NCBI GenBank assembly: GCA_977016875.1
Contig: CDRNST010000180.1
Span: 2,170,001-2,234,000, forward strand
Source: Pavona decussata
Taxonomy: Eukaryota
Length of the DNA: 64,000 nucleotides
Reading direction: 5' to 3'
Shown: in pieces, positions 11,560-64,000 of the stretch
Numbering within the stretch: the stretch's first letter is position 1
Layout of the letters: each line of letters begins with the position of its first letter
Program-made: the position numbers and the translations under genes
The notes under the pieces: generated by a model
Seen by the model: the letters and a program-made list of their open reading frames with translations, nothing else
What the model was told of the DNA's origin: nothing
The model's database searches: none

Positions 11560-12720
11560 AGGTGAAATCCGGCTCTAGTGTGACCGGCCATTCAAATCGG
11601 AAACTGCTACTAGTGAGCAGTACTTTCCCGTGGGGCTGTTTATTCTATTGTATTGAAGACGTTTCTAACTTTTGAGTCTGTAGATGAAATCCTAAACTGT
11701 GACAATTCAAATGAAAGCCACTGAGCAGTACTTTCCTGTGGTGCTGTTTATTACGCTGTACAAGGTGGTTCTAACGTTTGAATCTGTGGATAAAATCCTG
11801 AAGTGTCACCATTCAAATGAAAGTTACTGAGCAGTACTTTCCCGTGGTGCTGTTTATTACGCTGTACAAGGTGGTTCTAACGTTTAAGTTTGTGGATCAA
11901 ATCCTAAAGTGTGACCATTCAAATGAAAGCTACTGAGCAGTACTTTCCAGTGACGCTGTTTCCTTGTGTGCTGAAGATGTTTCTAACTTTTGAATCTGTG
12001 GATGAAATCCTAAAGTGAGTGTAACCACCCAAACGAAAGCAATTCTTTCCTGTGGTACTGTTGTACAATCTATAGTTGCTATAACTTTTGTTTGAGTTCG
12101 TGGATGAATTCCTAACGTCTGACCATTCAAATGAAAGCTACTGAACATTACGTTCATGTGGTGCTGTTTATTATGCTGTATAATTAGTAGTTCAAACTTG
12201 AGTCTACAGAGAAAACCCGAAGATGTGACTATTTGAATGAAAGCTACTGAGCAGTTCTTTCCTGTGGTGCTTTGGTTGTAACTATCGTCTGGGAATAAAA
12301 TACTTATAAGCCGTGTGTAACAGTTGAAATGAAAGCGTCCTAAGCAGTATTTTCTCTGGTACTACGTGTATTATCCTGTTCTAGTTGGTTCAAACAGTTT
12401 CAGTTTCGTCTGCGAATGAAATCCTAAAGTGTGACCATTCAAATGAAAGCTGCTTAGCAGTACTTTCCTGTGGTGCTGTTTATTGTGCTGTACAGGTTGG
12501 CTCTTAACTTGAGTCTGGTCAGGTTTTAACTTTTGAGTCTGTGAATGAAATCCTTCAGTATGACCCGTTCAATTGAAAGCTACTGAGCAGTACTTTCCTG
12601 TGATGCTGTTGACTTTTGCTGTACAGGTTGGTTCTTAACTTGAGTCTGGTCAGTCTGTGAATTAAGTACACTACTTGGAGGGCTTCTAAGTAAGCAGTCC
12701 TTTCCTTTGGTGCTGTTTAT
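11560..12720 (+). repeat. Tandem array of ~10-11 diverged ~106-bp units
   Basis: Recurring GTGTGACCATTCAAATGAAAGCTACTGAGCAGTACTTTCCTGTGGTGCTGTTTATT...GTTCTAACTTTTGAGTCTGTGGATGAAATCCTAAA. AAATGAAAG occurs at ~11709, 11815 and 11921 (106-bp spacing). Confidence 0.93.
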
Positions 12721-14691
12721 GATTCTGTATAGGCTGGCTCAAACGTTTGATCGTGCATGCGGATAGACTCGTAAAGTGTGATATAAAACTATCACGCGGG
12801 TATTTAATTTTTTTTCTTTTTGTATTTTATTATTTTCGAAAGAGGGTAGTTTGAGTCGGTGTGAACTTTATTGGGGCTTGCAAGGAGGCGTGTCTAAACG
12901 AAAATTTTTGAAAAAAAGGTAGGTAACTCCCTACATCCGGTCTTGGTTAAAACATTGAGCAGTACTTGACTCTGGTGATAAATATTTACTTGATGACTAG
13001 GGCTTCGCAAATTTGATTTTCGAGAGATTTTTTAGCGCTTTTTACGGACACTTAGACTCGTAAAATGTTTGTCATCTTAGGCCATTTGTTTCCATTAAAT
13101 GGCCACTGCGAAGTTCATTTATTAAAATCTCGTTAACGAAACGGTTTGGAGAGAAATAACACCGAGTGAGAGAAACTACTTGTCTACAGTATACCGCGAC
13201 ACAACACATGACCATAGTTGAAAAAAGATACAATACTGAATTTGACCTTTGGCTTGTAAAGGAAATAAAACCTGACTAACGTAAGAATCAGAGAGGTTAA
13301 ATATCTTTCAATTTTCCATTTCTGTGTGTTAAATGATAAAAGCATAGCTTCCGGTGGTGAACAACTTTCGAGGGACGATTCTTGCAAAACAACTTGGATC
13401 TCCACGACCGGACATCTAGAAATGATGAGTTTTTGTCGGTTTTTCTTTTCCAACATCTTGAATAAACTCGTATGTCAAAGCCCCTCTGTGGCCGGATGAC
13501 ACTTTAATATACCGTGAAATTATTTGTTATGACTTTAACTTGTTGATAGTTTATGTGAAAAGTCACGAATGCATAAAGGGTCAAATTGAACCTATTTTCT
13601 TAACTGACATATAAATACTGAAGCATAGAATTAGCATGGGAAAGTTCATAGTGATTTCAAAACTCTCTTCTCTCAGTCAATTGCTCACACTGGACTCTTA
13701 AAAACTGGCTTCACTTAATGGGTGGAGCCGATAACGTTTAAAATAGTAATTTGTTATTTCTTCACTCTTTCTCCACACTCATTGAAACAGTGAATTACCT
13801 TGAAACAATTTAATGGCTTCATAACTCTTTTGTTGATGGACTGAGTGGATGACATTCAGAAGATGTATTTGTTATTTCTGCACCATTTTCCCATTCTACT
13901 TCGCTCTCAAGGCAATGCAATGAAACAACTCTAATGATTTAATGACACTTTACAAACTGAACTACTCAAGCCGCTTGCCCAATTAATTATATGTCAGAAA
14001 TTCAGCGGGTAAGGTCTATTTTGAAACATACACAGCTTTTAAGTACCCCGCTCTCTGTCCTTTGCCTCTGCGGGGTGTAAGCCCTAACCTGACATGCATT
14101 TTAGGAAGATCCTCAGGCTGTTTATGTTACACTGATTTTAATAGAAGATCAACCTTAGTATCCAAGAATAGTTTGAAGACTTCAACGTTACTATAGTCAA
14201 AGAAAATTTGATACTATTTTACATAAGGTTATCAGTATTTACGATTTTTACACTGTTAATATAATATCTCTTAATCTTTACATGTTTTGTGGATAGTATA
14301 CTTGGGCTAACAGTAACTGTTACCAAACAAAGAGGTTTATATAGATATATGGATACCTTTAATTTACACAGACACGGAAAATCGCTAGTACACTATATAG
14401 CATTGAAATATAGCGTTGAAATCATATCTACTTCCCAAGGAAGAAAAGACCTTTAACTTTGTGTTTGGTAGCCTATGGAGTTTTTCAATGCCTTAGATTA
14501 AAAAAAAATTTCAAGTTGACCTTGTTATCATTATTGGTTAGTTTTCCTTTAAACATACGATGTGAATTTTAAACCTGGACGTTTGTTTAACAAAAAACAA
14601 TAATAACAAAAAAATAATGAAACAAAATAAACGGCACAAACCCTGGGATAAATAAAGGTTGACCAAACTGCAGTTATAGAAAGATAGAAAA

Positions 14692-18900: not shown

Positions 18901-19696
18901 ACGAAAAAAAGGGAATTCAAGAAAGTTAAACCACGTACAATTCCCTTTACATTTCAATCACTGGCAAGACTGACCTCATTTCCAAGCTGCAACACTGTTT
19001 CATTCTAAACTATTATTGTTTGGACACCCGTTTTCAAATGTAGTGTTTGTTTAGGAAGGGATATCCTGAAAATGTCCTTAAACAGAATGGGTCATGAGTT
19101 TTTAAAATTGTGTTTTTTGTTAAAAATACTCATCCCGTAAACTCGTGCCAATGACAAAACGTTCAACAGGTGTTTATCAAAAATGGTCTCGCTTCTGTTC
19201 GCCGTATGTTGAAAAGGTCTGAATAGTGTATCAGGCCATAAATACTTCAACATGCTAAGGAGTGAAGCTAGAGACACGCTATATTCTGTTCAACAACCCG
19301 GGCATGTTGAACCGAGAAAGCAAATTAAACAAGCGGCCCACTTGAGAGAGGATTTACCTGCCCTCACCGTGTAGCGTAGGGCAACTTTCTATTGCTGAGG
19401 AGTTGAGAGAACTCGCTACTTGTGAATTTACATATTTATCATTAATCTCTTTCTTCTTAGGTCACCTTTCTGTGATTTCATCCATTGTCGTTTTGCTACA
19501 TTCCTCGAGATAACTAAACACTATACAGTGGTTTTTAATAAGCGTCATCACTTCAAGAGATTGGGAACACGCGGAGATTACAGTCTAATTGCATCTGTCA
19601 GTGTTTGACCCCTTCACCCCCAAGACTGCTCAAGTTAGTTCAAGTTAAAAACTTAAAAAAATATGTTTGATTTCAGTTTGAAAAATAACAAAAAAC

Positions 19697-19790
19697 AAAC
19701 AGTACCACAGGAAAGTACTGTTCACTAGCTTTCATTTGAATGCTCACAGCGTACAATTTCATCCACAGATTCCTAAGCTAGAACGACATT
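19697..19790 (-). repeat. Solo inverted copy of the ~106-bp repeat
   Basis: ACAGTACCACAGGAAAGTACTG...GCTTTCATTTGAATG...TTTCATCCACAGA is the reverse complement of the unit. Confidence 0.8.
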
Positions 19791-22100
19791 GCATCAAACA
19801 GATGGGTTGAATAAAAGTCGGGGTTGTATTAAATAATCCAATTTGGAAATTCTTCTCATACATTGTGGAGAGGTTTTGATACTTTTGCTTTATCTATACA
19901 GATTACCTTGCGTGCGTTTGACCCCGGAGGGTAGTTGAGTTGTTTATTTCCTTTAAATTTCGCCCATGACATGATGTTCAGTCTTGCATGTTTTGAGTTA
20001 AAACAGCATACACCACGTTTCGTGCTTGTTCAGTTATTTAGACTGAGAAACAAAAGCCTGTGATTTATCCACCACTTTAACTCAGTGTGAAATTTGTTAA
20101 TCACATCAAATAAAAATCATCAATATTTATTCTAGCCGCATGGGAGATAGTTATTTCACCATTTTAACATCCTTGTCACATTGTTAACGCTTTCCCATGG
20201 CACAGAAATTTCAGTAACACCCCAATAACATGTACTTTCCTGTTGAGTTAAATTGAGAGTCTAAGAACAGAAATATTCTATACCACGATTTTCGTGCTTC
20301 AATATAGAAACATTAAGGCTGTTGTTCTTTTTTTACACTTGAAATTAACCCTTATCCACCAAGTATTAGGTTTTCAGACTTACATCGGAAGCTTTGTCAG
20401 TTGATATTGTCTGGGAATTCAATTAGTGTCAACGGAGTTTATCGCATGAATCCGCCTTACATTGATTATAGGGGCTTTTGATCACGGCAGGGCGACATTG
20501 CAGCTGCCTTTTATAATGTTTCCAACTTTGGTCCTAAAAGACGTATTTCATTTATGATGGGAAGGTTAAAAAGCTGTATAATCCGCAACAATCGTCTGCA
20601 GATGGTCACAACGGTAGGTGGATTATGGTACTTGATGATAGTGGGTTAGTTCACCTCGATATCTAACTGGAACCCGACCAGGGATCGCCAAACCCAATGC
20701 ACTCGAACCGCAAGCAGAAAATTTTCCGGCTTTTCACACATTAAAGTAACTCAACCCACCATAAGTAAACTTGAATGTACCCAGGGATGAACTTAACCAT
20801 GAACCTAACAATCTCGTGTCATTTCAAGTCAATTGTAGCAGACAGACAAAAAATACAAAGCGAGCAAATGCTTAAAGAGTCTACTGATATGCTAAATATC
20901 TACACTTCCGCTTCTAGCATATACCTTGAGCAATACATACCTCAAGGCGATTGTTAGTTAGCTTATTATTCTTGCCCTTGGCTGTAATCAAAGACAGTGA
21001 TGACTGTAAAGGAAAACTATAAAACAGACAGTATGTATCGAGTTTGTCATGAACTTTGTGCCTTCGGTTGTTGTTCGTTCGGTCGACCAAGCCTCGCCCC
21101 ATTTTTTCTATTATCGTGTTCAGTAATCTTAGTTGTTTTTCGTTTCCGTGAATGCGTGCCTCTTGTAAGGGTCTAAAGTGTAGAAGAGCGAACAACCTTG
21201 ATAACAATTTCGCTAACAAGGCTCTCGTGCATGAAACTTGTGTATACATAGTTATGATAAATGTACTGCAAATGGGTGTGTCACAGCTCAAGAACAAGCT
21301 TTCCTTGTTGACAGCTTTCGATCTTTTCACAACGAAATCAGTTCATAACTAACAAGAATCCATAGGCTTAAGATGGTGTACCCTGAAAATTGGGATATAC
21401 TGAACATTTTACTTAAACAGTTTTTAGTTTTATATATGGTGTCTCCTGAGGGTCGACGTTGGGTCATGTGATAATGTAATTATCTATGAGTCTTTGGACT
21501 GAAAATTCTAAAGAATAAACCGTTCAAATGAAAGCTATTGAGCGGTACCTTCCTGTCGGTGGCGCTCTACAAGGTGGACAGGTTCTAACTTTCGGTGTGT
21601 GCATGAAATTCTAAAGAGTTTTTTTTTATTTTTATTATTATTATTCACAACATATTACTTACACTACTTAACAATATGATGCTTACCCTACTTACAATAT
21701 AATACTTTACACTTAAACACAGACATGAATAAAACGAAACTTGCCAATTAATAAATTGTGGCACATACAATATGTGTTTAACAGAGATATTACACAACCT
21801 AAAAGACGCTACATCTACTCACATTATAAAAGGTTACATGGCAGCGAAATAAAATAATAACAATAGAATTGATAACAAAAGTAACTAAATGGGAAAAATA
21901 AAGACATGGGCGCCGCTATTAAGCACTTAAACTGGTGGTATACTTGTTTCATTTGCGGTTAAAACTGGATTCATGTTTGGTGAATTTGTTGATCTTAAAT
22001 TCTATTTGATAAATATAATAAACTTTACAGATAAATAATCTCAGAGTGACCATTCAAATAAATTAAGGCCATTGACCCGTGGCAATGTTTATTATAATAT

Positions 22101-22873: not shown

Positions 22874-25800
22874 AGTTTTATCCTGTACGTAAACAACTGA
22901 AAGCTACCAAGCAGTGCTTTTCACGTTGGCTTTACACGGCCGTTCTAACTGTTGAGTCTACTTCTGGGTACAATTGTTCAAAGTAACCATTCAAATGACA
23001 AGGATTAAATAGTCCTTTCCTGTGGGCTGTGGAAACCTGAACTACTCAGTGATGAAAGCGTTTGCGCAGTAGTTTCCCATTTAGCTGTTTGTGGCATTCC
23101 TAGAAGGAAGAAGTTAACAAGATAACAGCACTTCGCAATTTGGCAAAATTTCCACAACGATTGGGTAATTTTTATCAAGTTACAGTTAGATTAGTAGACT
23201 TCCTGTCTTTTTGACGTTTTGTCCTCGATAGGCCTTATGGGCGCATGCGCAAGTGTCGGACATGTTTGTACCAGAGGAAATAAGTATTCAGGCACAAGTC
23301 AGATGATGCACAATTATTCGCATCAGATCACTGAACGCATCAAAAGGTCTCATCCGAATTGGCCGAGTGTGTAATTCAAACCACACACTAATCTATCTCT
23401 TAGCCTCAACTAAAGCTACCCTCGTAGAGAAATCAAAGGCTTTGGAGCCATTTTAACACTATGAGATTGCTGTTTTGTTTATATATGGATGGAGTCGTGC
23501 CAGCACAAATGTCTACTACTTGTTTTTAGTTGGGAACACGAACTGACCAAACTGGCGTGAAACACACATTGCTAATGAAACTGAGCTTAGGTGAGCACAC
23601 ATTTAAGATATGTCTTATACCAATTGTAGTGTTTAATCCATATTTTCGTCCGTATAGTGTGAGCCCTTGTTACTCTGGGTAATAAGCACACTAAACGGAG
23701 TCGTTATGTCGGTATAGTCACGTTCCTTGAAATGTGTTTAGCTAGAAATTTCATCGTCAAACAGCTCTGGACTTGGAAAATGAAAACAGCCGCAAACAAA
23801 TGCAAAATGGTCGTATTTTGATTTTTAGATGTTTACAAGTTGTTTAAAATAAGCCGCAAAGTTTATGTATTCATATTTAAAATAAAGTTGGACACCTATT
23901 TCAGTATCCAGGTTAATCTACAGAAAATTGTTCGACTGAAATCTTTGGTTGTACGTGAAAATACCCCTCTATCTTAAGTAACCACGTTGCGTTATACTGT
24001 CATAACTGACGAAGTGGGTCACCTTTTTCAAGTTGAACTTTCCATTGCGAAAGGTTCATCATTGACCTATTTACTTTTTTTTAAAAATGTTTACCTTCGT
24101 TGGGGAGACTTTGTAAACTAAACAGCACTGATCATCAGCTTTCATTAAAAGTTCAACACTGTAGAATTTCGCCAACAGGCTCAAAGAAAGGTTTTTAGGT
24201 TTTTAAACTGAACCACAACACTTATAAACTCCATCATATTTCCTTCTCTCACTAGAACGAGCAACTCCAGTGTAGTTTGTTGAAATTATACTTTGTAGTT
24301 TCTAATACTGGTTGAAGAGCTCTGCTAGTTTAATTTATGCTTGGGTTAGGAAAATACAACAGTAAGGAAAAAAGTGTTGACAGCAAATATATAAGTATAT
24401 AGTATACGTTAATTTTTTATATTATTTATGTTTGGCTATCAAGTAGAAAAAGTTTGAATTTCTTTTTAAAAACATTGTAGGGCAGACACTTAACTTCCAT
24501 TGGAATTGTTTCCCAGGTTTGTGATGCCACTACTCTAAAGCGTGCTAAACCATAATTAGTGCTAAACCATAGTTAGTGTTAAACCATAATTCCTATAAAG
24601 TTCTCTTATTAACGAATCTGGTACTATCTTACAAGCACCACCTGTGTATTTGACTATCAATCGTGATCGACGAGATAATACAAATTTCAGTTGTGTAATT
24701 CTATTTTCAGTTTGATCTGACTTTCGTTTAAGAAATCTCCACCACAGTTAAGGCGTTCACAACACAAGTTAAATAGTTTGCTTTACAGTTAGAGAACAGT
24801 ACTTTGCTGTGTTGCTGTGAATTGTGCTGCACAAAATGTTCTAACTCTGAAATATGTAGGCGTCCAATGAAATCCATAGAGCACAACAGATTTACAAAAG
24901 CCGGAGTAATTAATACTGATCAGCACAGTAGCAGAGGGCCTCATATGCGTCAGTATCATTGATGTGTCAGGCCATTGATTTCTGAATCTCATTGAAAAAT
25001 ACATTGTACTATGACTTTATGGTTTATTTGCATCGCTAATAGACTTTTTTTTTCTTGCATTTCAGGTAGAAAACCATGGACTTAAATTTCATTCTGTACG
25101 TAAACGGAAAAGAGGATTTAAATCCGAATTCATCCCGTTCTTCGGAACCAGAGCCAGGAACTCTGAACGTGCAATGTATATTCATGGCCAGTGAAGGATG
25201 GTCAGTGTACTTATGAAATGATCGTGAACTCAGAGGCGGGAACTACAGTAAGAATAGAGAATAATGAGCTTTACATAGAATGAGTTAGTAAATTAAACGA
25301 GGTAGTAAAGGAAGATATGAACTTCAAAGATGATAAGATGGCCAAACTGCCTTAAAACAACTCTCTGTGTTTACTTTTTAATACAACCCAAAAAAGACGC
25401 TGAACTTAGTGAGAACATACGTAATTCATCCTGCAACAGTTAAAGATAAAAAATTGTCGCTGGCCAGTAGCGATGATGTGATGCAACTGATTTTTGGAAA
25501 GTATGCATTTGAGTTTAATTGAAGAGCAAATTTTGTGAGTTTTATCAGTGCGCGACAAAGTAATGTTCTAGGCAGTAAAGTTTGTTCTTTCACGAATACA
25601 TACGACCAAAACAGTTCAAAAATGGAGAAATTAAACGAATAGTTTTCATGAAGAAACTAGATTTTCAGAAAACGATAGGCTTGTAATTTGAACTAAATGT
25701 TTTGTTAAAATCCATTTGGCCAGATGTTTATAAATGTTTCTTGTTTTACAAGTCAATTCATTCAGTTAAGTCAATGTTTGCCCCCTTTCAGCGTCAGTAT

Positions 25801-28800
25801 GTTTTTGTTTTTATGCGTTAAATGAGTTGTTATTATGTTATAAGTTCAAATCTATGCAGTGTTCGACGCCATCTTGTAATCACGTGTTCACAAGGAAGAC
25901 TGGAGCGAGTCGGCTGCTGTGCTTATTTATGGCGCGAAAATTTGGCGCGTTTAGTGTTCTGAAAGAGGCCTGTGTTGTCTGTGTTAGGAAAAAATAGGTC
26001 AAAGAAGAACAGAACTCTTATTCTTTCAGACTCATTTTTAACATACCGATAATTGTTACATCGTTAAGTGCAGTAGGCAAAACTAATATGCTTTGGATCA
26101 AAATTACATGAAAATTTTCTGTTAAGTTTTGAACGAAGAAACGAATTTAGTTTTCTTTGTAAAATCTGCAAACATTGCATTACTTTAACTGATTTATTTT
26201 GCTTCTCTGTTCCTTTTCTGTCGGCAGTTTTCATCATGTCTCCGTAACTCTTTCGTGAGATTGGATTGATTTTGTTCACAAATAACAGGATATCTTAGAT
26301 CTCAGACATTTCAACAACAGGCAAGCGTGACAACTTGGCCCAAACGTTTCTATGGCTACCAATACCATGGCAAATGATAAGGGTTCCGACTTATCTCCTT
26401 ATTTAGGACAGGAAGTGTCGGTAACATGTCACCACGTGACACACATTGACACCTCAGTGAAGGAGTATAATTAATTATGTATTTATTAGATTAATTTCGA
26501 GATCTCGAGACAACAAGGAGCCAAAATTCTCGTCTGGTGCATATGAGAAGCACCGGCATTTTCCGGATTTGTAATTGCTTTTCTTAAACAGTCGTTTAAC
26601 GGAATTTGATCAGTCGTTCCCAAGTGCACAAGGAAAAAATAAATTTTGGGCCTCAATTCAAGATGCTGTTTTTCCACTCGGTGTATACACTACTAAAGTG
26701 TGACCATTCAAATAAAACTACCGAGCAGTGTTTTCATGTGGTGGTGTCTGTGTCACCAAAGCTAATCTGGTATTTTCCATAACTTCTTATTTGAAGTGTT
26801 AATCCTTCTATTTTTGTCCTCTTATCTCAAGCAATAACATTTTTGCATCCATGGATAGCTTCAATATTATGTCGAGGTGCAACTGTTTTCAGGAGAAATG
26901 TCTTCGACTATTCACGCACAGGAAATTGCAGATAAGCCTGGAAAATCCTTTTTGACGTTTTATTTATGGTACTCTAGTCGATAACTGCGGTCTGCCAGAC
27001 CGGGAAACCAATATTCCAACAATGTGTCGCCCACCATCATGAACGTTAGAAAAAAAGCCATTCCACAAACAAACTGCTCTATTCATTCTGTGGATCTGAC
27101 TGCAGTTGATTTATAAAAAGTTTGAACACTAGACACTAGAAGAGTTTATTAAGATATTTTTAAAAAGTGGAATTTTTATTTAATACACACAGACTAAACA
27201 GTTCATTTATTTCATGATTTACACAGAGAAGCCCTAGATGCATTTTATACATTTTTTCGAGGCGTCGAATCTGACTTCTGTCTGACATAAAAACTGGGTG
27301 TCAACTCACTTGCGCAATTTTCCGGTTTTGCTCATCATTATTATGTAGCTAAGTAACCATTAAAATGCCGCCTTGACAGAAACTTTCCTCAAAATATACA
27401 CAATAGCTTTCTATGGCACTGGCAATATTTCAGTCTCAAATGTATGTAATGGAATCATTCTAGCTAATTCTGAAGCCCGCCATTACGGTTGCTCTTCTTT
27501 TGACTGCCCCTTCCATTCAAGATGCCAAGGATGAATATAGTTGTTAAATTTACACTATAATGCTCTTCGAAAGTACAGTTGGAATTTATGCTCAACTCGC
27601 TCTTTGTCTGAAGGAGAGAGATGTTTTTGTTGTGTAAGAATCACGTGACCCAAGAGTCCTGAAAGAAGGCAGTGTTCAGTTTGAAAGAGTTGAATAAATA
27701 TTATCAGCCATGTAGAACATTCGAAAAATAATAGCAGTTGCTATTCTCTCGAGAAGATAACCTAGTTTGGCATTGTTAGAGACTTTCCATTTACTTACCA
27801 TCAGGGAACCGTTTGCCTGTCAAAAGGCTTGCCAAATTTAAGCTGTGATAAATACAACTCCATTAGTTCCATTATAGAACTGTCTTGTCAAAATGATTTA
27901 TGATTTCTCGGTTTTCCTTTATGTTGAATTTCTGGCTTGTTGGCTGGCTTATCTCGCCACAGCAGAACGTCGTATTGCAAAATAACTTTGTTCGCTCATA
28001 AAGTTTTAAAGATTTTGCAAAAAACTCTTCCTGTGGTGGTACGAAATATTTATACCTGACCGAGTCTCCTACTATTCTTCAAAATGGCGTCCATGTTTGA
28101 GTGAAGTCAAGTTAAACTGAGAGAAAGCCTGAAAGCAAAGCTATGAAGAGAGACAAAGTCGACATTCAAAGCTGAACCAGCAAAGTGAGCAGATAAATAT
28201 CAGTCAATACTTGCATATGTATATGAGGCCCTGAGTTAAAATAATGTTGTCAGTAGAAGATACACACTTTATTAACTTCCCATTAGGAACTAAGGTAATC
28301 TGCGGTTGTGATTTTTGAGTCTGTGGATAAAATTAAGTGTTACTACTGATATGCAAGCTACTCGGTAGTGCTTTCATGTAGTAATTTTTGGCTTTTAGCT
28401 ATAGGATGTTTGCGAAGTGTAGGTTTCACACAGTTCGATCAAATTTATGTTATAGGAAATGACAATAGCTTGAAGAAGAATTGCACGACATCTTAGGTTT
28501 TCTGAGCAAAGTTTGTTATAGTGTTTCTTGGCAATGTGTTTCTACCCTTCAATTAAATCATGCAACGACTGTTTAAGTTTAATGCAAGACTTCCAGTTAA
28601 GTAACTGCCGATGTTTTCTTTCCCATCAAAAGTAATAATCTAACTCCTTGTTCAAGTTTGTGTTCGTGTTCGTTGTAATTGGAATCGCAGTCAACTTGAA
28701 GTCGCTTGGCGGGGACTGCTTGTGATTAACCCTCCCCAAAACATATGCATATATGTATTACTCTTTAGTTCAGTTAAATTGACAATCACATTGGAATTTG

Positions 28801-42860: not shown

Positions 42861-44309
42861 ACATTGTTTTTATTTTGCCATTTTATTTCATTTGGTTTCA
42901 GCCGCCGGGCAATGAAACTTCCTTTGCAAAGATGAATCATTCATCTTATTTCTCAAGATAAAGACATAAATTATCTCCGTTTCACTGATTTACACTTGTC
43001 TGACTATATGAAGTAGACTATATTTTTGGAGAAGACTTATTATTTTCAAAATCCCATATGCGATTAATTTCAAGTAATTCATGCATTTGTTTAGCGATTT
43101 TGGCGTTTTTTTGTTTTTTGTTTTTTTTTTTTGGGGGGGGGGGGGGAGGGCGGTTATGTACCAATCCGATATGAAATCTCTCCATGTACAAACGATCTGT
43201 TCAAGTAATATAAATTCGCCTTTTCCTTATTTTGACTCACGGCAGGTACGGAAACTTCATCCATTTGTTGTTGTTGTTGTTGTGTTGTTTCTCTGTTTCA
43301 TCCAATGAGCGATGTCATCCCTTTGTTTCGTAATTTGTTTCGATTTCTGAACTGCGCCAGAAATCTGTTAATGTATAAACAATTATTAGCATTGTAACTT
43401 GACTTCACACTACTCTTTTTTTGCTACTGCGCATTTCGGGATGCTCCGAGAAGCTCTGATTTCTTAAGGACGGCGGCCTCCTAATTCAATAGGTTTTTTG
43501 TTCGCGATTTATGAATATGCCGGGAAAGAAGATTTTAGAAGGGCATACGTTGTAAGTTGCGCTCACAACTGTGATGGTCCTTTTTTGTTTTTGTTTAGTC
43601 TTTTATACGTAGTTCACATATATGGTTTTTCAGCTATTTCACTTCAGTTTTGTTCGAAATAAGCTTTTGCACCTTGCCGTTGTTTAACGCTGGTTCCCGC
43701 ATCTCCTGCGTCAGGCCTAACAGGTAGACTGATCACATGACACGAAACTATTTTTTCAGGCACTCCCAGTAATGGGTAAACGGAAATGAATAAGAGCGCT
43801 TTGGTGACCACACCTGGCAGGTTTAACACAACCCAACTAACACAAAATCGATATCCTTAGTATCGATTGCTACATTCTACAAGCATATACGACATCAGTG
43901 CATGAACAGGCTTCAACAGGACTTTGCACTCAATTATCTTTCAACAAACAAATAAGCCACCCCCATGTCACTATTTAGCACAGGATGACAAGTCAAATAT
44001 TTATGATATACACAGTGATCAGGCAGGAAATATGGTGCTGTGTTTCATGGGAAGTCTTTTAAGTGGACGAAGTGACAAGCTATGCTTTTGACGCCTTGTT
44101 TGCGCCGACTGGCGGGCGCCGCGCAAGGATTACAATCGTTTCATTGTATCTTACATGTCCGGCCGACAGGGATAATGGTTCCCTAGGACTCCAGTTAGAA
44201 ACGCCCTAACATTCTAGTTAGCTTACTAGAGCTGCTAGAGGACAATAGTGGCAATTTTTCTAAGGTTTTTCCTTATGCAAATTGAAATGGCAACTGTAAT
44301 AACAACCCT

Positions 44310-44560
44310 CAGCTGCTTTCATTTGAACGGATCAACTTTAGGATATCAATCACAGACTAAACAGTAAGAGCCACCTTGTTTAGCGAAGTAAAATGTACCA
44401 CGGAAAAGTTTTGCTCAATAGCTTTCATTCGTATGGTCATACTTAAGGATAACCTTAAGGATCAATGGATCCATGGACTGAAAAGCATCACAGGATGGTA
44501 CTGGTCAATTGCTCTCATAGAAATGACCACCAGCACACTTAAGGATTTTACTCACAAGCG
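44310..44560 (-). repeat. Two to three degraded inverted units of the ~106-bp repeat
   Basis: GCTTTCATTTGAA, CACAGACT and GCTCAATAGCTTTCATTCGTATGGTCATACTT match the unit on the - strand. Confidence 0.7.
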
Positions 44561-51249: not shown

Positions 51250-51956
51250 TGTACATAAAGTTTTACATTTATAAATAGTACGCTGGAAGTTAACAAGAAT
51301 GTCGTTAAATGTAGTTTAGCATTGAATCACAGTATTTGAAACAGTTGAATATATAAACTTTGACAGTAAACGACTGTACTTGAAGAAATAGTATAGAAAC
51401 CGAACTTGTGATGGGAAATCGTTTCTTCACAATTTTACCATGTAGTGATACTCATTAGAAGCAAGTATTTTATACCACGTAAAAGTACATAGAAAAGGTA
51501 AAAGTTAGCGTGTAGTTGAGTTTAGATGTTTAACTAACAATAGTGATCCATGCGTAGCTTTGCTGTTAAGAAACAAAGCAAAGGAACTGAGTCTTCATGT
51601 CTCTCTTTGAACGAATCAACTTAACACCTCATCGGTAACCCACAGACGTCTGACTGAGAGCGCGTGAACAGACCATCATGCCTTATTTACACTTTTAAAA
51701 TTTCTTATTCGTCAATGGCAGTTTTGTAGCCCGGCAAACTTTGGAACTAAAGTGGCAGTTCAAAAATACCATCAGAATCAATCCACGCGGGTGAAACATT
51801 AGCGCATTTTGTTGCACGTCTCTCCATGGCAGACTTGAGAAACACTCTTTTCGCCTGACAAGTGCGAATGGTCAATTTTTATACACCTATAAGTCTGAGG
51901 TAAAAGGATTTACGACAATTTGTAATTGATAACCTAACGAATTTAATGTTTGTAGC

Positions 51957-52234
51957 CTATCTTGTACATCCGCGACGCATTCCTCTACTCGTTGGTATAA
52001 CTGGCTTGTTGTCTTTCTTCCATTTCATTCTTCTATTTTGAAACCAGATTTTGATTTGCCGTTCGGAGAGTTGTAACATGGAGGACATCTCGGTGCGTCT
52101 CGCCTTGGTTAGGTATCTTGTGAAATGAAATTCTTTTTCTAGTTCCAGAATTTGATTTCGTGTGTAAGCAACTCGTCTTCGATGCTTGAACGGTTGCTTG
52201 TAATGCCACGGGACATCTTTGTCATCTTCACCGT
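51957..52234 (-). CDS. Anthox1a: Anthox1a gene, exon 2 (W-motif plus homeodomain)
   Basis: Acceptor ATTTAG|AC, phase 1. Translates [84 protein letters not shown] and FTRYLTK..RTEM are Anthox1/1a-type; linkage to Anthox7/8 favours 1a. Confidence 0.88.
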
Positions 52235-52579
52235 CTAAATATTTAAACAAATTTTGAATTTCATTAGTTAAGGTTCCCGCGAAAGTATTAGTTAGAAACA
52301 AAGTGGATTTGAACTCAACTCTGATAGCACTTCAAAGGTTTAGTAATGCAATCAATGTTAAGCAATAAAAAACACTGTTTTTCTTAAATATTTCATATGA
52401 ATGATTGATTCTTTTCAATATTCCATTTGACCTGTGGGTAATCGAACTGATTGCACACTCAAACATTGTTTAAAATTTGTTCCTGTTGTAACTTCAATCG
52501 GCGCTTCGATGCTATACTTCCACATGTTTCGATTTGCGCGTACTGTTTTGTTCTACTCAAATGTAACTCCAAATCGTAC

Positions 52580-59523: not shown

Positions 59524-60734
59524 CTATGAGTGCTGTAAAATTTTTAGCGCCTCTGATCTTGAATGAATTTTTTCTCACATTGTCTCTTATTACAGTCCAC
59601 TGAATTTAAGCCCCGCCAAATGTTTTTAGTTGCTTTAGAATAAGGCTAAATAAAAAACTGTCATAATATGAACATTTTTTTATTGTAAATATAGCAGACC
59701 CATCACTACATCAATGAATAAACCTACCAAGACGTTCGCTTTCCTACGTCTTTTTTCTATCAGCTAAATTTCTAAATCTCTTTGTTTTTAGTGATGTGTA
59801 CCTTGTCGGTTGGGACATGAGATCACTGACGTATTGCGTGTAGAGAAACCCTGGTTATAATTTTTTGCAAAGAAAGAGAGCGATTTTACGTTTACGCACT
59901 GTGATTACGGGAATATGCTAAACAATATTTGAAACGCTTCTTGGTTAATAGACCTCGCGTTACAATTATAACTGAGCCGTAAAACTTCTACGCTGAACTG
60001 TGATACTACTTTGTCACATATCGTCCTGTTTTTCAGCGGTAATCAATATGCCCGATTTTTTCACACAGCCTGAATCAGTGACTAATACCAGTTTCAGTTT
60101 ATAAAACGTTCTTGAATACAACACGCACTTTCTAGTTCAATACGAATGTTTTTAAATATTGTTTGGTATTCATTGTTTAGAATTCAAAAGCGACGTTCAT
60201 TGACTCAGCTGCCAACTCGAGCTCATATTTGTTGATATAATCAGAGATATATATAATTCCAGGCCCTCGGTGCCGCTTCTTATTATCTACCTTTACGAAC
60301 ACACTTGGTCCGTTGGCTGTATCAGTTTTGAATATCTTACTTCCGTGGTAGAATATTCCGCTAATCTCGGAAAATTTTAAATCAGCGCGCGCACATTCTC
60401 AGTGGGAACTCTTTAGGTTACCAAGGCTTTTAGTCACAAGACTCAAGGTGCATACGAAAATCGGCCGATGCACGTGCTCTGTCTTCCAAATATGGAAACG
60501 CAATGTGAACATGACCAATGAGCAATTCCCGGATGCACGTGAGTCGTGTTCAATACTGTACCTTGGCGGGAAAAAGTCCAGAGTACGGTACCAAAACAAA
60601 CCTAGATCCTGTACAACCGGTCTAGCCTTGGACTTCCAAGGAATACAAAATAAAGAGACACTAAAATAATATTATCATACCACGGAGCATTTTGTATCAG
60701 TGGTAAGAATTTTGTTACGCCTTAAAGCTCCAAG

Positions 60735-61430
60735 ATGGATCTTTGCGTGAAAATTTTGAACGACACCGAATCTGTGAACTCAGCGAAACGTCTTTTGTAC
60801 GATGTCTATATCCACGAGATGGGTTGGGACTTTCGTGACGATAACCCAACTGGTTTTCGCATCGATAAAGACAAACGAAACGAGCCGATTCTTTGTGATG
60901 TTTTTGATGATGATGCCGTCTGGTTCGGCGCCTACAAAGAAGACAAAATAATTGGAGTAACTCGCGCAGTACAACGAAGTAACGCCCTTGGGAAGCTCGA
61001 CCTGGAGCTGTATCCGGCGAGTGGACTACCTTCCATGAAAAGAATTTTACAAGGAAGTAATGGTCATAAATTGGTAGAAGTGCAGCGAGGTGCAGTTTTG
61101 AAGGACTACAGAAAAACACAGCCAAGCATTATCCAGTTACTCCTTTTATACGTGTTTGGTTACGCGCAAGAGAAAGAACTCAGTGTTGTGTGTCCCACCG
61201 TATTCCCCGTATTAGAGACTTTATTTAGCCGCGCTGGTATGCAGTTGGTGGAAAAAAATTTCACCTACGGTGAAGGAGGCGAGGAGTGGCCCACTTTTAT
61301 CTTCTACTGTTCCTCAGCTGAGTTGGCGCAAGTTGCGAGGAGATTAAAAATAGCGGGAGGAAAACGGAAATCAAGCTTCTTACAAGAAAGAGGACAGCAA
61401 GCTAAACGACGCAAATTTCTTGTCGTCTAA
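60735..61430 (+). CDS. Intronless GNAT-fold acyltransferase, LuxI / N-acyl amino acid synthase (FeeM)-like, 231 aa
   Basis: Longest ORF in the window, with AAGATGG start context. Ordered motifs AKRLLYDVYIHEMGW, DVFDDDAVWFGAY, IIGVTR, LDLELY, LVEVQRGAVLKDYRK and LFSRAGM parallel the LuxI/NAS pattern. AATAAA at ~61751. Confidence 0.75.
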   Translation: MDLCVKILNDTESVNSAKRLLYDVYIHEMGWDFRDDNPTGFRIDKDKRNEPILCDVFDDDAVWFGAYKEDKIIGVTRAVQRSNALGKLDLELYPASGLPSMKRILQGSNGHKLVEVQRGAVLKDYRKTQPSIIQLLLLYVFGYAQEKELSVVCPTVFPVLETLFSRAGMQLVEKNFTYGEGGEEWPTFIFYCSSAELAQVARRLKIAGGKRKSSFLQERGQQAKRRKFLVV

Positions 61431-62039
61431 CTCCAGGATTTTCAAAGGGAAAGGGTCGGGCAATTTTCAGCAGCGGGTTAACTTATAAATTTCTGATATT
61501 TTTAAAAGTTATATGTCGGTAAAAGAAATATGGAAAAGATTTATTTGATATCAGTTGTGCATGATATTATTTGATATTGTATATACCGGTACAGCGGTAA
61601 AAGAAAATATGGAAAATATTTCATTGATATTCAAGTTGTGGGTAGCAACTTCATTCAAGAGATCGACAGAAAAATTTGCATCCCTCATCAAATTCAAAAC
61701 CCACATATTATCTTTAGTAAAGTACACTAAAGAGAAATAACCCGTAATTGAATAAAGGAGCTAAATTAAAACATGTTTGACCATTTGTTGTATTGTTTTA
61801 CCCGAAACATCATTTAACTATTTATTTTCCATTGTACTTACGATTGTTAAAAATGTCAATTTTCATGTTTTCTTTGTTTAAAGTTATTAACTATAACTGA
61901 AGACAAGATTATTGTTTTTCAATTATTGCACCGGAGCTTGCACAACCGAAAGCTCAAAACGCTTTGTACTGTATCCAGACCGTGAACCGTCCCGGCACAT
62001 AAAAATATTTTCGTTTTCCTATTTGTAATTATTTTCTTT

Positions 62040-62238
62040 NNNNNNNNNNNNNNNNNNNNNNNNNNNNNNNNNNNNNNNNNNNNNNNNNNNNNNNNNNNNN
62101 NNNNNNNNNNNNNNNNNNNNNNNNNNNNNNNNNNNNNNNNNNNNNNNNNNNNNNNNNNNNNNNNNNNNNNNNNNNNNNNNNNNNNNNNNNNNNNNNNNNN
62201 NNNNNNNNNNNNNNNNNNNNNNNNNNNNNNNNNNNNNN
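62040..62238. other. Assembly gap (~200 N)
   Basis: Run of N. Confidence 0.99.
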
Positions 62239-62322
62239 TAGAAAAACTATTTACAAATTCTCACCTATTTACAAATAATAATATATGACCAATTCACATT
62301 CCACCATCGTAGACTAAAATTT

Positions 62323-62499
62323 TGATGATGATGATAATAATAATAATCATCATCATCATCATCATAAAGAAAAAACAAATTTCATAGAGTTACAATAATT
62401 TTCTTATTTGTAATAAAAAACCATATGGTCGTATTCTGACTAAAAATATTTGGAAGTAAAAATAAGCTCCTTAAGGAAAAACAGTTCTTATTTAAAATC

Positions 62500-62530
<31 letters not shown>

Positions 62531-62551
62531 AATAATAATAATAATAATAAT
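62323..62551 (+). repeat. Two compound (ATC/GAT)n-(AAT)n microsatellites
   Basis: Direct reading at ~62323-62365 and ~62500-62551. Confidence 0.9.
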
Positions 62552-63024
62552 TTACAAGAGGCTAATAACTACGGGTGGAAACAAACTTCTGTAACCAACA
62601 ATGACCTCTAGAAAGTTTGCTTTAATGAAAAAAAAAACAAAGAAAAGTTACATTAGCTGATGTGAAAACTGTTAACACGCCGGGTAACTGATCTGAAATC
62701 AAATTCAAGGAACAAACAAACAAAACGTCCTTGCGCGCGAGGAGGGTGGTAACCTCGAGTGGAGCGCGGGGACGAGCGCGCGCAGTGTGAAACTCGGCCT
62801 AGTCCCCGCGCATGTTGATCGCTAGGTGATCGGAACAATTAACCGATTAAGCAGATTAGGCAAAGCAGCAATTACAACGTCAATCATTTTTTTTATCACC
62901 TTAAATACTCAATTGACTAAGACGGTTACACAATGAAATTGTGACCCGGGATTAATTGAGGGTCACTTAAAACTCAAGCGCACGCGTTTAAGCTGCTTTC
63001 TGTTCAATCTGTGCACTCCAAAAC

Positions 63025-63283
63025 ATGGAAAAACATTCTCCCAAACTCTCCTTTTCAATAAGCCGGCTTCTTGGAACAACAGACGAGACAGATCCCGTGG
63101 AAATGAAGGATAATTCCTCGAATATCGGAGAGAGGAGCTTACAGTGTGGCCAGGCCGAATCTGCACAACAGAACAAAGTCGAACAACTCACGGTGAATTC
63201 GCAGAGCAAGGGACACGAAGAGCGATGTATTTATCCTTGGATGACTCAGTTTAACAGGCGTAGCAAGGGAAAGAAAAAGAGAA
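63025..63283 (+). CDS. Exon 1 of a third ANTP-class homeobox gene; homeobox exon not found in this window
   Basis: AACATGG start context, eh1-like FSISRLL (aa 10-16), hexapeptide IYPWM, then a probable phase-1 donor AA|GTAAGG at 63284. Same architecture as the Anthox7/8 exon 1. Confidence 0.75.
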
Positions 63284-64000
63284 GTAAGGGAAATATTGTT
63301 GTTTATCGGTGAAAATAAGATACCATGCAACTCAGTGCCTTGTTAACACAGACATTAACTAGACAGCTTGACAAGTCTTTGCTAACAAGGCGACTGTAAC
63401 AACAAGGGTTTAGATAAAACTGAGTTTTGCTTTTATACTTAGAGCCATATTCGTCGGCTTCGGCGCTCTGACTTGTTGGCAACGTTAGGGACGATTTTAG
63501 ATAACAAATTTGCCAGAAACGCATCACAGCTTGAAGTCGAAATGCTAATTCTGCACTGCCAGAATCAACGAATTTTCTTCCATGGTTAGCGGGAAAAAAA
63601 AAGTTTCCAAAGTAGCTCAAATTCATACCGGTTTAACATTTGTGGTGAATGCAATATAGCAATGTGCTAATTCTGATGTAAAACACGGCCTTTCAGCTCA
63701 GATAACAATACATGGACTAACAGAGTAAATTACCCTCTAACAACACTGAACAGCCCGTTCCAAGTGACAGTCTCACACATTGTAAATAATGGTTGCAATC
63801 CTGAATGAGCTGTGTGGACCGACAGAATTTAGGTCAGCTGATAGTATTTTGCGATATAGTGTCCTTTCTAACAGTTTTGTTTCGCTTCCAGCCCACTCAC
63901 AACATGTTCAGTCTCAAATCGGTCCAGACCATGAAAATGTCTAAAGAGGTGTTTCGTCAACCTCGAATATCATGTGCCAAAACCGCTGACTGTTATGAAT

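Follow-up and report, generated by a model that had tools for sequence, protein, structure and literature searches.

The window, by which we mean the whole stretch of 64,000 nucleotides of Pavona decussata DNA that was analyzed, carries an intronless acyltransferase gene on its forward strand, with homeobox-gene sequences on both sides of it (51945-52253 on the reverse strand and 62791-63406). Table 1 gives the positions of the gene, of the parts of the C-terminal tail that it encodes, and of the putative signals around it.

Table 1. Features of the acyltransferase locus, in window coordinates
Feature	Position	Strand	Basis and remarks
Conserved upstream region, putative promoter/5' UTR	60385-60734	+	blastn against L010, 78%
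CACGTG E-boxes (two)	60471-60476, 60536-60541	+	Sequence reading, putative promoter
CCAAT	60515-60519	+	Sequence reading, putative promoter
Acyltransferase CDS, intronless, stop codon included	60735-61430	+	ORF list; 231 aa, Acetyltransf_5 GNAT, FeeM/LuxI-like fold
Upstream basic cluster, K210-R211-K212	61362-61370	+	Translation; candidate importin-alpha minor-site contact
Spacer, S213-A223, 11 residues	61371-61403	+	Translation; includes S214 in R-K-x-S-hydrophobic context
Downstream basic cluster, K224-R225-R226-K227	61404-61415	+	Candidate major-site contact, P2 to P5
Terminal hydrophobic residues, F228-L229-V230-V231, true C-terminus	61416-61427	+	Translation
AATAAA poly(A) signal	61751-61756	+	321 nt after the stop codon; compare the ending of L012

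The predicted protein has a mass of 26.3 kDa. Its Pfam score for PF13444 (Acetyltransf_5) was 24.5 bits, above the family cutoff of 22.4, and its score for PF21926 (FeeM) was 18.7, below the cutoff of 27; the latter family is on record for the relatives P0021, P0048, and P0059. NCBIfam models of the OlsB ornithine N-acyltransferases gave only weak matches, and the LuxI sequence family gave none at an E value of ≤1 in either Pfam or NCBIfam, so the protein is not filed here as a LuxI member. At the level of the fold, however, the relationship was clear. An AlphaFold2 (AF2) model obtained with 14 homologues as input (pTM of 0.79 and mean pLDDT of 76) retrieved the FeeM chains of PDB entry 2g0b as the top Foldseek matches (E values of 3e-8 to 5e-7), followed in the ranking by the acyl-homoserine-lactone synthases BjaI, TofI, LasI, MesI, and RpaI. 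The original prediction, which had spoken of a LuxI/NAS-like enzyme, is thus borne out as a description of the fold but not as a statement about sequence family. The E-x-x-R core motif (E115 and R118) is almost invariant. A sequence search of solved structures, with both the protein and the family profile, returned only generic GNAT matches with weak E values, none of them informative on the tail. Judging from the modeled fold, the protein is a bacterial-type N-acyltransferase of the FeeM/LuxI fold, with N-acylation as its predicted activity.

A homeodomain gene (PF00046 in locus L008) lies ca. 8.5 kb upstream of the acyltransferase in two other coral assemblies as well. The PF00046 gene of L008 matched window positions 51945-52253 (reverse strand) at 92% by tblastx, L009 matched positions 51958-52235, and L010 shared the downstream region 62791-63406. 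Given that this neighborhood is conserved across coral assemblies, the acyltransferase has been a stable resident of it, and the synteny with the upstream homeobox gene, kept in two other coral assemblies, establishes the acyltransferase as a real animal gene.

The region also contains repeats and some doubtful reading frames. Positions 11560-12780 are occupied by tandem repeats of ca. 106 bp each, which gave staggered blastn matches of 70 to 80% to arrays in the coral loci L008, L009, and L010; shorter copies are found near 19690-19800, 21487-21619, 22894-23025, 28304-28389, and 44308-44450. The corals seem to have a repeat family in common here, within the Hox region. A trinucleotide microsatellite (GAT/AAT/ATC runs at 62320-62370 and 62450-62611) adjoins a gap of Ns at 62021-62239, and the ORF with His/Asn runs that arises from it is most likely not a gene. 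Gene model P0004 has an N-terminal extension similar to the spurious ORF at 60448-60669; this extension looks like an over-called start, as probably does that of P0014.

Two kinds of contigs bear on the transcript. A contig of 1,132 nt from run X1, which shares its organism label with the window and whose RNA label is a guess, was collinear with positions 60689-61740 at 98% identity and had nothing matching 60300-60688; it looks like an unspliced transcript starting 46 nt before the ATG. Transcript-like contigs from runs X1 and X6 both extend to position 61740 and continue with letters unlike those of the window. In the metatranscriptome runs X2 and X3, no contig was found over the ORF, only over the 3' flank. 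L012, a contig of an orthologue, opens with an Illumina adapter and closes with an AATAAA, a short gap, a poly(A) stretch, and an adapter; it represents a polyadenylated cDNA that spans the whole ORF, tail included. For the species of the window, the evidence of expression comes from runs with a guessed RNA label; taken together with the poly(A)-ended orthologue, the X1 contig supports the view that the tail belongs to the mature mRNA.

Translation of positions 61362-61430 (forward strand) gives 22 residues and the stop codon. The original prediction had placed a bipartite nuclear localization signal (NLS) at 61362-61415, and these positions correspond exactly to K210 through K227, with KRK and KRRK 11 to 12 residues apart. 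The same positions had been taken for the C-terminus, which is incorrect, as F-L-V-V follows K227 before the stop. Under the Robbins-Dingwall rule, a bipartite NLS consists of two basic residues, a spacer of 10 to 12 residues, and at least three basic residues out of five; the stricter consensus is KR-X10-12-K(K/R)(K/R) or K(K/R)X(K/R). The tail of the window protein fits the rule with spacers of 10, 11, and 12 residues and fits the KR-X10-12-K(K/R)(K/R) form likewise with its K-R-R-K, which is in addition a monopartite-type motif.

The bipartite pattern is loose and occurs in a few percent of nonnuclear proteins. Among 20,000 shuffles of the protein, it appeared anywhere in 15% and within the last 30 residues in 1.1%, and near the C-terminus it was seen in 2 of 144 tail-less relatives. 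The tail is markedly basic, with a K+R content of 36% versus 12% in the domain. For the NLS-like pattern, conservation (see below) is a stronger argument than these chance statistics. In the AF2 model, a confident last helix (residues 194 to 207) is followed by residues with a pLDDT of <50 (211 to 231), so the tail is predicted to be a disordered, exposed linear-motif region; its pLDDT is 36 to 41, and its terminal end is not packed on the domain. By this model, the tail has the exposed and flexible character expected of a classical bipartite NLS. As for other C-terminal signals, the peroxisomal targeting signal type 1 ([SAC][KRH][LM]) is absent from the coral proteins, which end in V-V, and L229-V230-V231 fits the class II PDZ ligand pattern (hydrophobic-x-hydrophobic-COOH), a pattern of almost no information content.

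The tail is widespread among corals. A word search found 22 relatives, all from coral-type data. The copies of Montipora foliosa, Porites lutea, and Oculina patagonica lie on chromosome-scale contigs of 33 to 53 Mb, and a Desmophyllum pertusum gene model carries the tail too. Nearly every full-length coral copy, the named ones and many others, has the tail, and the two coral models without it are truncated or frameshifted. The bipartite pattern is present in all full-length coral-clade copies save the cluster P0022 to P0024, where A-W-K stands at the site of the first basic cluster. Montipora and Porites are complex corals and Oculina and Desmophyllum robust corals; with the tail present in both, it predates the scleractinian crown group. 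One entry is anomalous: P0042 (Desmophyllum pertusum KAJ7372612.1) is a 672-aa model named “Dynein heavy chain 3, axonemal” that ends with the acyltransferase tail and shares a 90% cluster with the 231-aa proteins, and it is most likely a fused or misnamed gene model.

We compared three tailed clades, namely, the main clade, P0017 (62% identity), and P0020 to P0022 (45 to 48% identity). In the main clade, the layout is K-R-K/N, a clade-conserved spacer, K-R-x-K/R, and F-L-V-V. Across the alignment of tailed copies, K224, F228, and V231 never vary, conservation reaches at least 90% at K210, R211, and L229 (alignment A2), and position 227 is always basic (K or R), while position 226 may be R, S, Q, E, or G and is free to vary. 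F228, L229, and V231 are kept even in the clade with 47% identity, and no C-terminus like F-L-V-V was found among the 144 tail-less relatives. In every clade the spacer is 10 to 11 residues long; one conserved sequence is shared across the main scleractinian clade, with unrelated and acidic ones in P0017 and P0020 to P0022. The strict consensus is found in the main clade (K-R-S/Q/E/G-K/R) and in P0017 but not in P0020 to P0022, which have K-L-K/R-K, with L at P3. The loci of P0020 to P0022 showed no flanking similarity to the window; they are AT rich, with sparse genes.

The K-R-R-K of the window is shared with just one other cluster (P0006), and most species have K-R-S-K. The second cluster that had been predicted as KRRK is therefore correct for the window sequence but is not the conserved form, and it varies even within the labeled species. 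In the X1 contig, 61410 C>A changes R226 to S (R226S), turning KRRK into KRSK; two further differences in contigs of runs with the window's organism label, 61397 G>A and 61412 C>T, leave the protein unchanged. The differences probably reflect different alleles or material from a close relative. The species of the window appears to be polymorphic at R226S, and so a basic residue at position 226 is not fixed, even within the same labeled species.

In order to read this conservation, it is useful to consider how importin-alpha binds its ligands. The minor site takes K-R and the major site K-(K/R)-X-(K/R), where the Lys at P2 is critical. Linkers may vary widely and are often acidic. At the sequence level, the position-specific conservation of the coral tail matches this tolerance profile.

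We then looked at selection with a codon alignment of eight loci, from which the comparison of tail and domain uses five main-clade orthologues. Among these five, the tail shows 5 to 11 synonymous differences over about 14 sites, which is near saturation, and 2 to 7 replacements over about 52 sites. The dN values of the tail (0.04 to 0.16) are similar to those of the domain (0.09 to 0.18), for which omega is 0.07 to 0.12. Together, the near-saturated synonymous sites and the few replacements show that purifying selection acts on the tail at the level of the encoded protein. Along similar lines, the position of the stop codon is fixed among orthologues, and the blastn match of L010 to the window (60385-61445, 78%) ends 15 nt past it. 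Conservation among coral orthologues had been set beforehand as the test on which the original prediction could fail; the tail proved to be conserved and, by these sequence comparisons, under purifying selection.

The relatives of the enzyme place the origin of the tail within the coral lineage. A profile search of 1.84 billion representatives retrieved 346 relatives, among which no tail-like ending was found outside coral-type entries (144 are tail-less, mostly bacterial). Noncoral relatives match only up to profile positions of about 195 to 224, and the anemone, Tara plankton, and bacterial proteins end at about residue 207 to 215 in coral numbering, that is, at the last helix or shortly after it (alignment A3). 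The Tara relative (P0048) is a tail-less protein of 213 aa from ocean metagenomes, and the anemone relative (P0049, Actinia tenebrosa XP_031572648) is a tail-less protein of 210 aa encoded by an intronless gene on an animal scaffold. The more distant relatives are bacterial, with annotations as gammaproteobacterial or Burkholderiales MAGs; some are fused to sensor-kinase-like regions, and the locus of one has MutH, BirA, OmpA, and AcrB as neighbors. When the anemone and Tara genes were read on in frame past their stops, nothing tail-like was found, and an origin by stop loss was not traced. The enzyme, bacterial in type, was probably acquired horizontally.

For the maximum-likelihood tree, the last 22 residues were removed, and the root was not established. 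All 14 tailed proteins form one group (support of 90/77; present in 89% of bootstrap trees), whose sister is the tail-less group of P0048, P0049, and P0053; jointly, the two are split from the bacterial-type proteins with support of 99/99. Since the tailed copies fall in one group on a tree built from the domain only, one gain of the tail suffices. Given that the root is not established, the tail may instead have been lost in the anemone lineage. The description of the tail as a eukaryotic addition is supported by both results, the tail-less endings of the anemone, plankton, and bacterial relatives and the single group of tailed copies. The alignment with bacterial and coral homologues had been expected to show the tail only in animal copies; it is indeed present in coral copies and in no bacterial one, but the animal copy of the anemone lacks it too.

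A separate observation concerns the C-termini of the tail-less relatives. Eighteen of the 144, including P0058, P0059, P0068, P0071, P0077, P0090, P0108, and P0110, end in a peroxisomal-type tripeptide (mostly S-K-L or S-R-L), versus ca. 0.3 expected by chance. The sole SKL-type locus checked (L013) is clearly bacterial (MutH, BirA, OmpA, and AcrB neighbors). These endings could be a C-terminus shared by the subfamily or a host-organelle targeting signal of a protein from an intracellular bacterium.

The reading that best explains the tail is that it acts as a classical bipartite NLS concentrating the enzyme in the nucleus, to which, on the strength of the sequence, we assign a probability of about 0.5; a nuclear role of the enzyme is plausible, with the balance about even. 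According to this scheme, K210 to V231 would be a C-terminal extension added once in the coral lineage and then kept by natural selection. K210-R211 of the flexible tail would occupy the minor groove of importin-alpha and K224-x-x-K/R227 its major groove, and this binding would concentrate the ca. 26-kDa enzyme in the nucleus. Since passive nuclear entry is possible for a protein of this size, the signal would concentrate the protein rather than permit its entry. Phosphorylation of S214, a putative site of basophilic-kinase type beside the first cluster, could make the import regulated; its context is R-(K/N)-x-S-hydrophobic in the main clade, and the site is absent from the tails of P0017 and P0020 to P0022. 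Importin binding, nuclear accumulation, phosphoregulation, and any nuclear substrate are steps that we infer.

Several features fit an import signal less well. F228, L229, and V231 are among the best-conserved residues of the tail, although they are not needed for import, and in the main clade the spacer and the basic clusters are equally well conserved, which would be unusual if the tail were an import signal and nothing else. Besides, the K-L-K/R-K of P0020 to P0022 breaks the K(K/R)X(K/R) consensus, and P0022 to P0024 lack the first cluster. Another possible, if rather unlikely, explanation is that the tail is mainly a protein-protein docking or assembly element with the invariant F-L-V-V end as its key part. 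This end could be a class II PDZ-type ligand or a terminal beta-strand inserted into a partner, as in strand-swapped GNAT dimers, and the basic residues would help to bind an acidic partner, e.g., an acyl carrier protein. Exchange of the C-terminal strand is known from GNAT dimers, and LuxI-type enzymes bind acyl carrier protein through basic patches. The retention of F228 and V231, and nearly always of L229, even in the 47%-identical clade with its unrelated spacer, points in this direction, as do the lack of an F-L-V-V-type ending in any tail-less relative and the conservation of the spacer within the main clade. However, docking leaves unexplained why the gap between the basic clusters stays fixed at 10 to 12 residues despite the turnover of the spacer; the class II PDZ pattern is almost uninformative; and AF2 left the terminal end unpacked, at the low pLDDT values given above. 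The docking and import-signal readings are compatible, and the tail could serve both.

Quite improbable, in our view, is a basic-hydrophobic membrane anchor that would keep a lipid-making enzyme attached to surfaces of acidic phospholipid, as the C-terminal helices do in NAA60. The FeeM and OlsB families do make or use lipids, and the tail of the window protein has a net charge of +7 together with F, L, and V; its basic-hydrophobic score is 0.64, versus a usual threshold near 0.6 (approximate figures). Nevertheless, on the same approximate scale, the orthologues score 0.24 to 0.51, except for P0013 at 0.64, so that the score is not conserved, and the divergent clades have an acidic spacer and a net charge of only +3 to +5. 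The helical hydrophobic moment is ≤0.5, there is a glycine in midtail, and AF2 shows no helix; conservation falls on specific positions and not on bulk charge. A conserved membrane anchor was rejected on the grounds of the variable score. Finally, the looseness of the motif (present somewhere in 15% of shuffles) and the polymorphic KRRK might suggest a tail without specific function, a product of neutral read-through whose likeness to an import signal is accidental. This is very hard to reconcile with a tail kept across both major scleractinian lineages and the more divergent clades, with saturated synonymous change and few replacements, a fixed stop codon, and DNA similarity that ends right after it.

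Returning to the bipartite import signal, we can extend it to a more specific scenario, which we regard as doubtful. Stony corals would have retargeted a bacterial lipid-signal or N-acyl-amide synthase to the nucleus by means of a phosphoregulatable bipartite signal, and there the Hox-cluster-encoded enzyme would produce acyl-amide ligands or transfer acyl groups to chromatin or transcription-factor proteins. If true, this would be a new animal signaling or chromatin-modifying activity of bacterial origin. We know of no nuclear function for any FeeM, OlsB, or LuxI-type enzyme.

The bipartite import signal is a well-known element, and the gain of eukaryotic targeting signals by acquired genes is a known theme. 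What is new here is the combination, undescribed in the literature searched, of a bacterial-type FeeM/LuxI-fold acyltransferase, fixed in a coral Hox cluster, with a selectively maintained tail that resembles an import signal. Literature searches on N-acyl amino acid synthases or LuxI in corals and cnidarians and on Hox clusters with acetyltransferases returned nothing on the gene or its tail, and a search on import signals of horizontally acquired animal genes returned no direct precedent. A term search of the main text of the 2016 eLife paper on coral comparative genomics likewise yielded no description of the gene or its tail.

For animal genes of bacterial origin, understanding seldom goes further than their presence, and here there is a concrete, datable step of domestication, in which a eukaryotic-style tail of 22 residues was gained once and kept across both major stony-coral lineages, while the nearest anemone and bacterial relatives are without it. 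Should the tail function in import, it would bring an acyltransferase of the FeeM/LuxI fold into the nucleus, a compartment in which none of the family is known to act; should F-L-V-V turn out to be the part that matters, the tail would point to a partner protein. Deletion or point mutants of the tail offer an easy handle on the role of the enzyme in corals.

In order to put the coral tail into perspective, we compared it with known systems. Like the classical bipartite NLS of the nucleoplasmin type, recognized by importin-alpha/beta, it has basic clusters 10 to 12 residues apart in a segment predicted to be disordered; the window protein and most orthologues fit KR-X10-12-K(K/R)X(K/R), and conservation is concentrated at the would-be P1'-P2' and P2/P5 pocket positions. 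It differs from that class in its invariant F-L-V-V end and its conserved main-clade spacer. FeeM (PDB 2g0b) is the best structural match (Foldseek E value of 3e-8; TM scores of 0.59 to 0.73), but the chains of FeeM and the bacterial relatives finish with the last helix, and a basic tail is missing. The LuxI family (BjaI, TofI, LasI, MesI, and RpaI) belongs to the same fold class, with ranks from 4th to 39th and TM scores of about 0.55 to 0.68, although sequence identity is only 12 to 17% and no solved member has such a tail. A parallel in architecture is NAA60, the plant structure of which appears among the fold-search matches. Both NAA60 and the coral enzyme join a GNAT domain to a short C-terminal extension that sets the location of the enzyme, a role that is a prediction for the coral tail. 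The extension of NAA60 is a pair of amphipathic membrane-binding helices, whereas that of the coral enzyme is not amphipathic and resembles an import signal.
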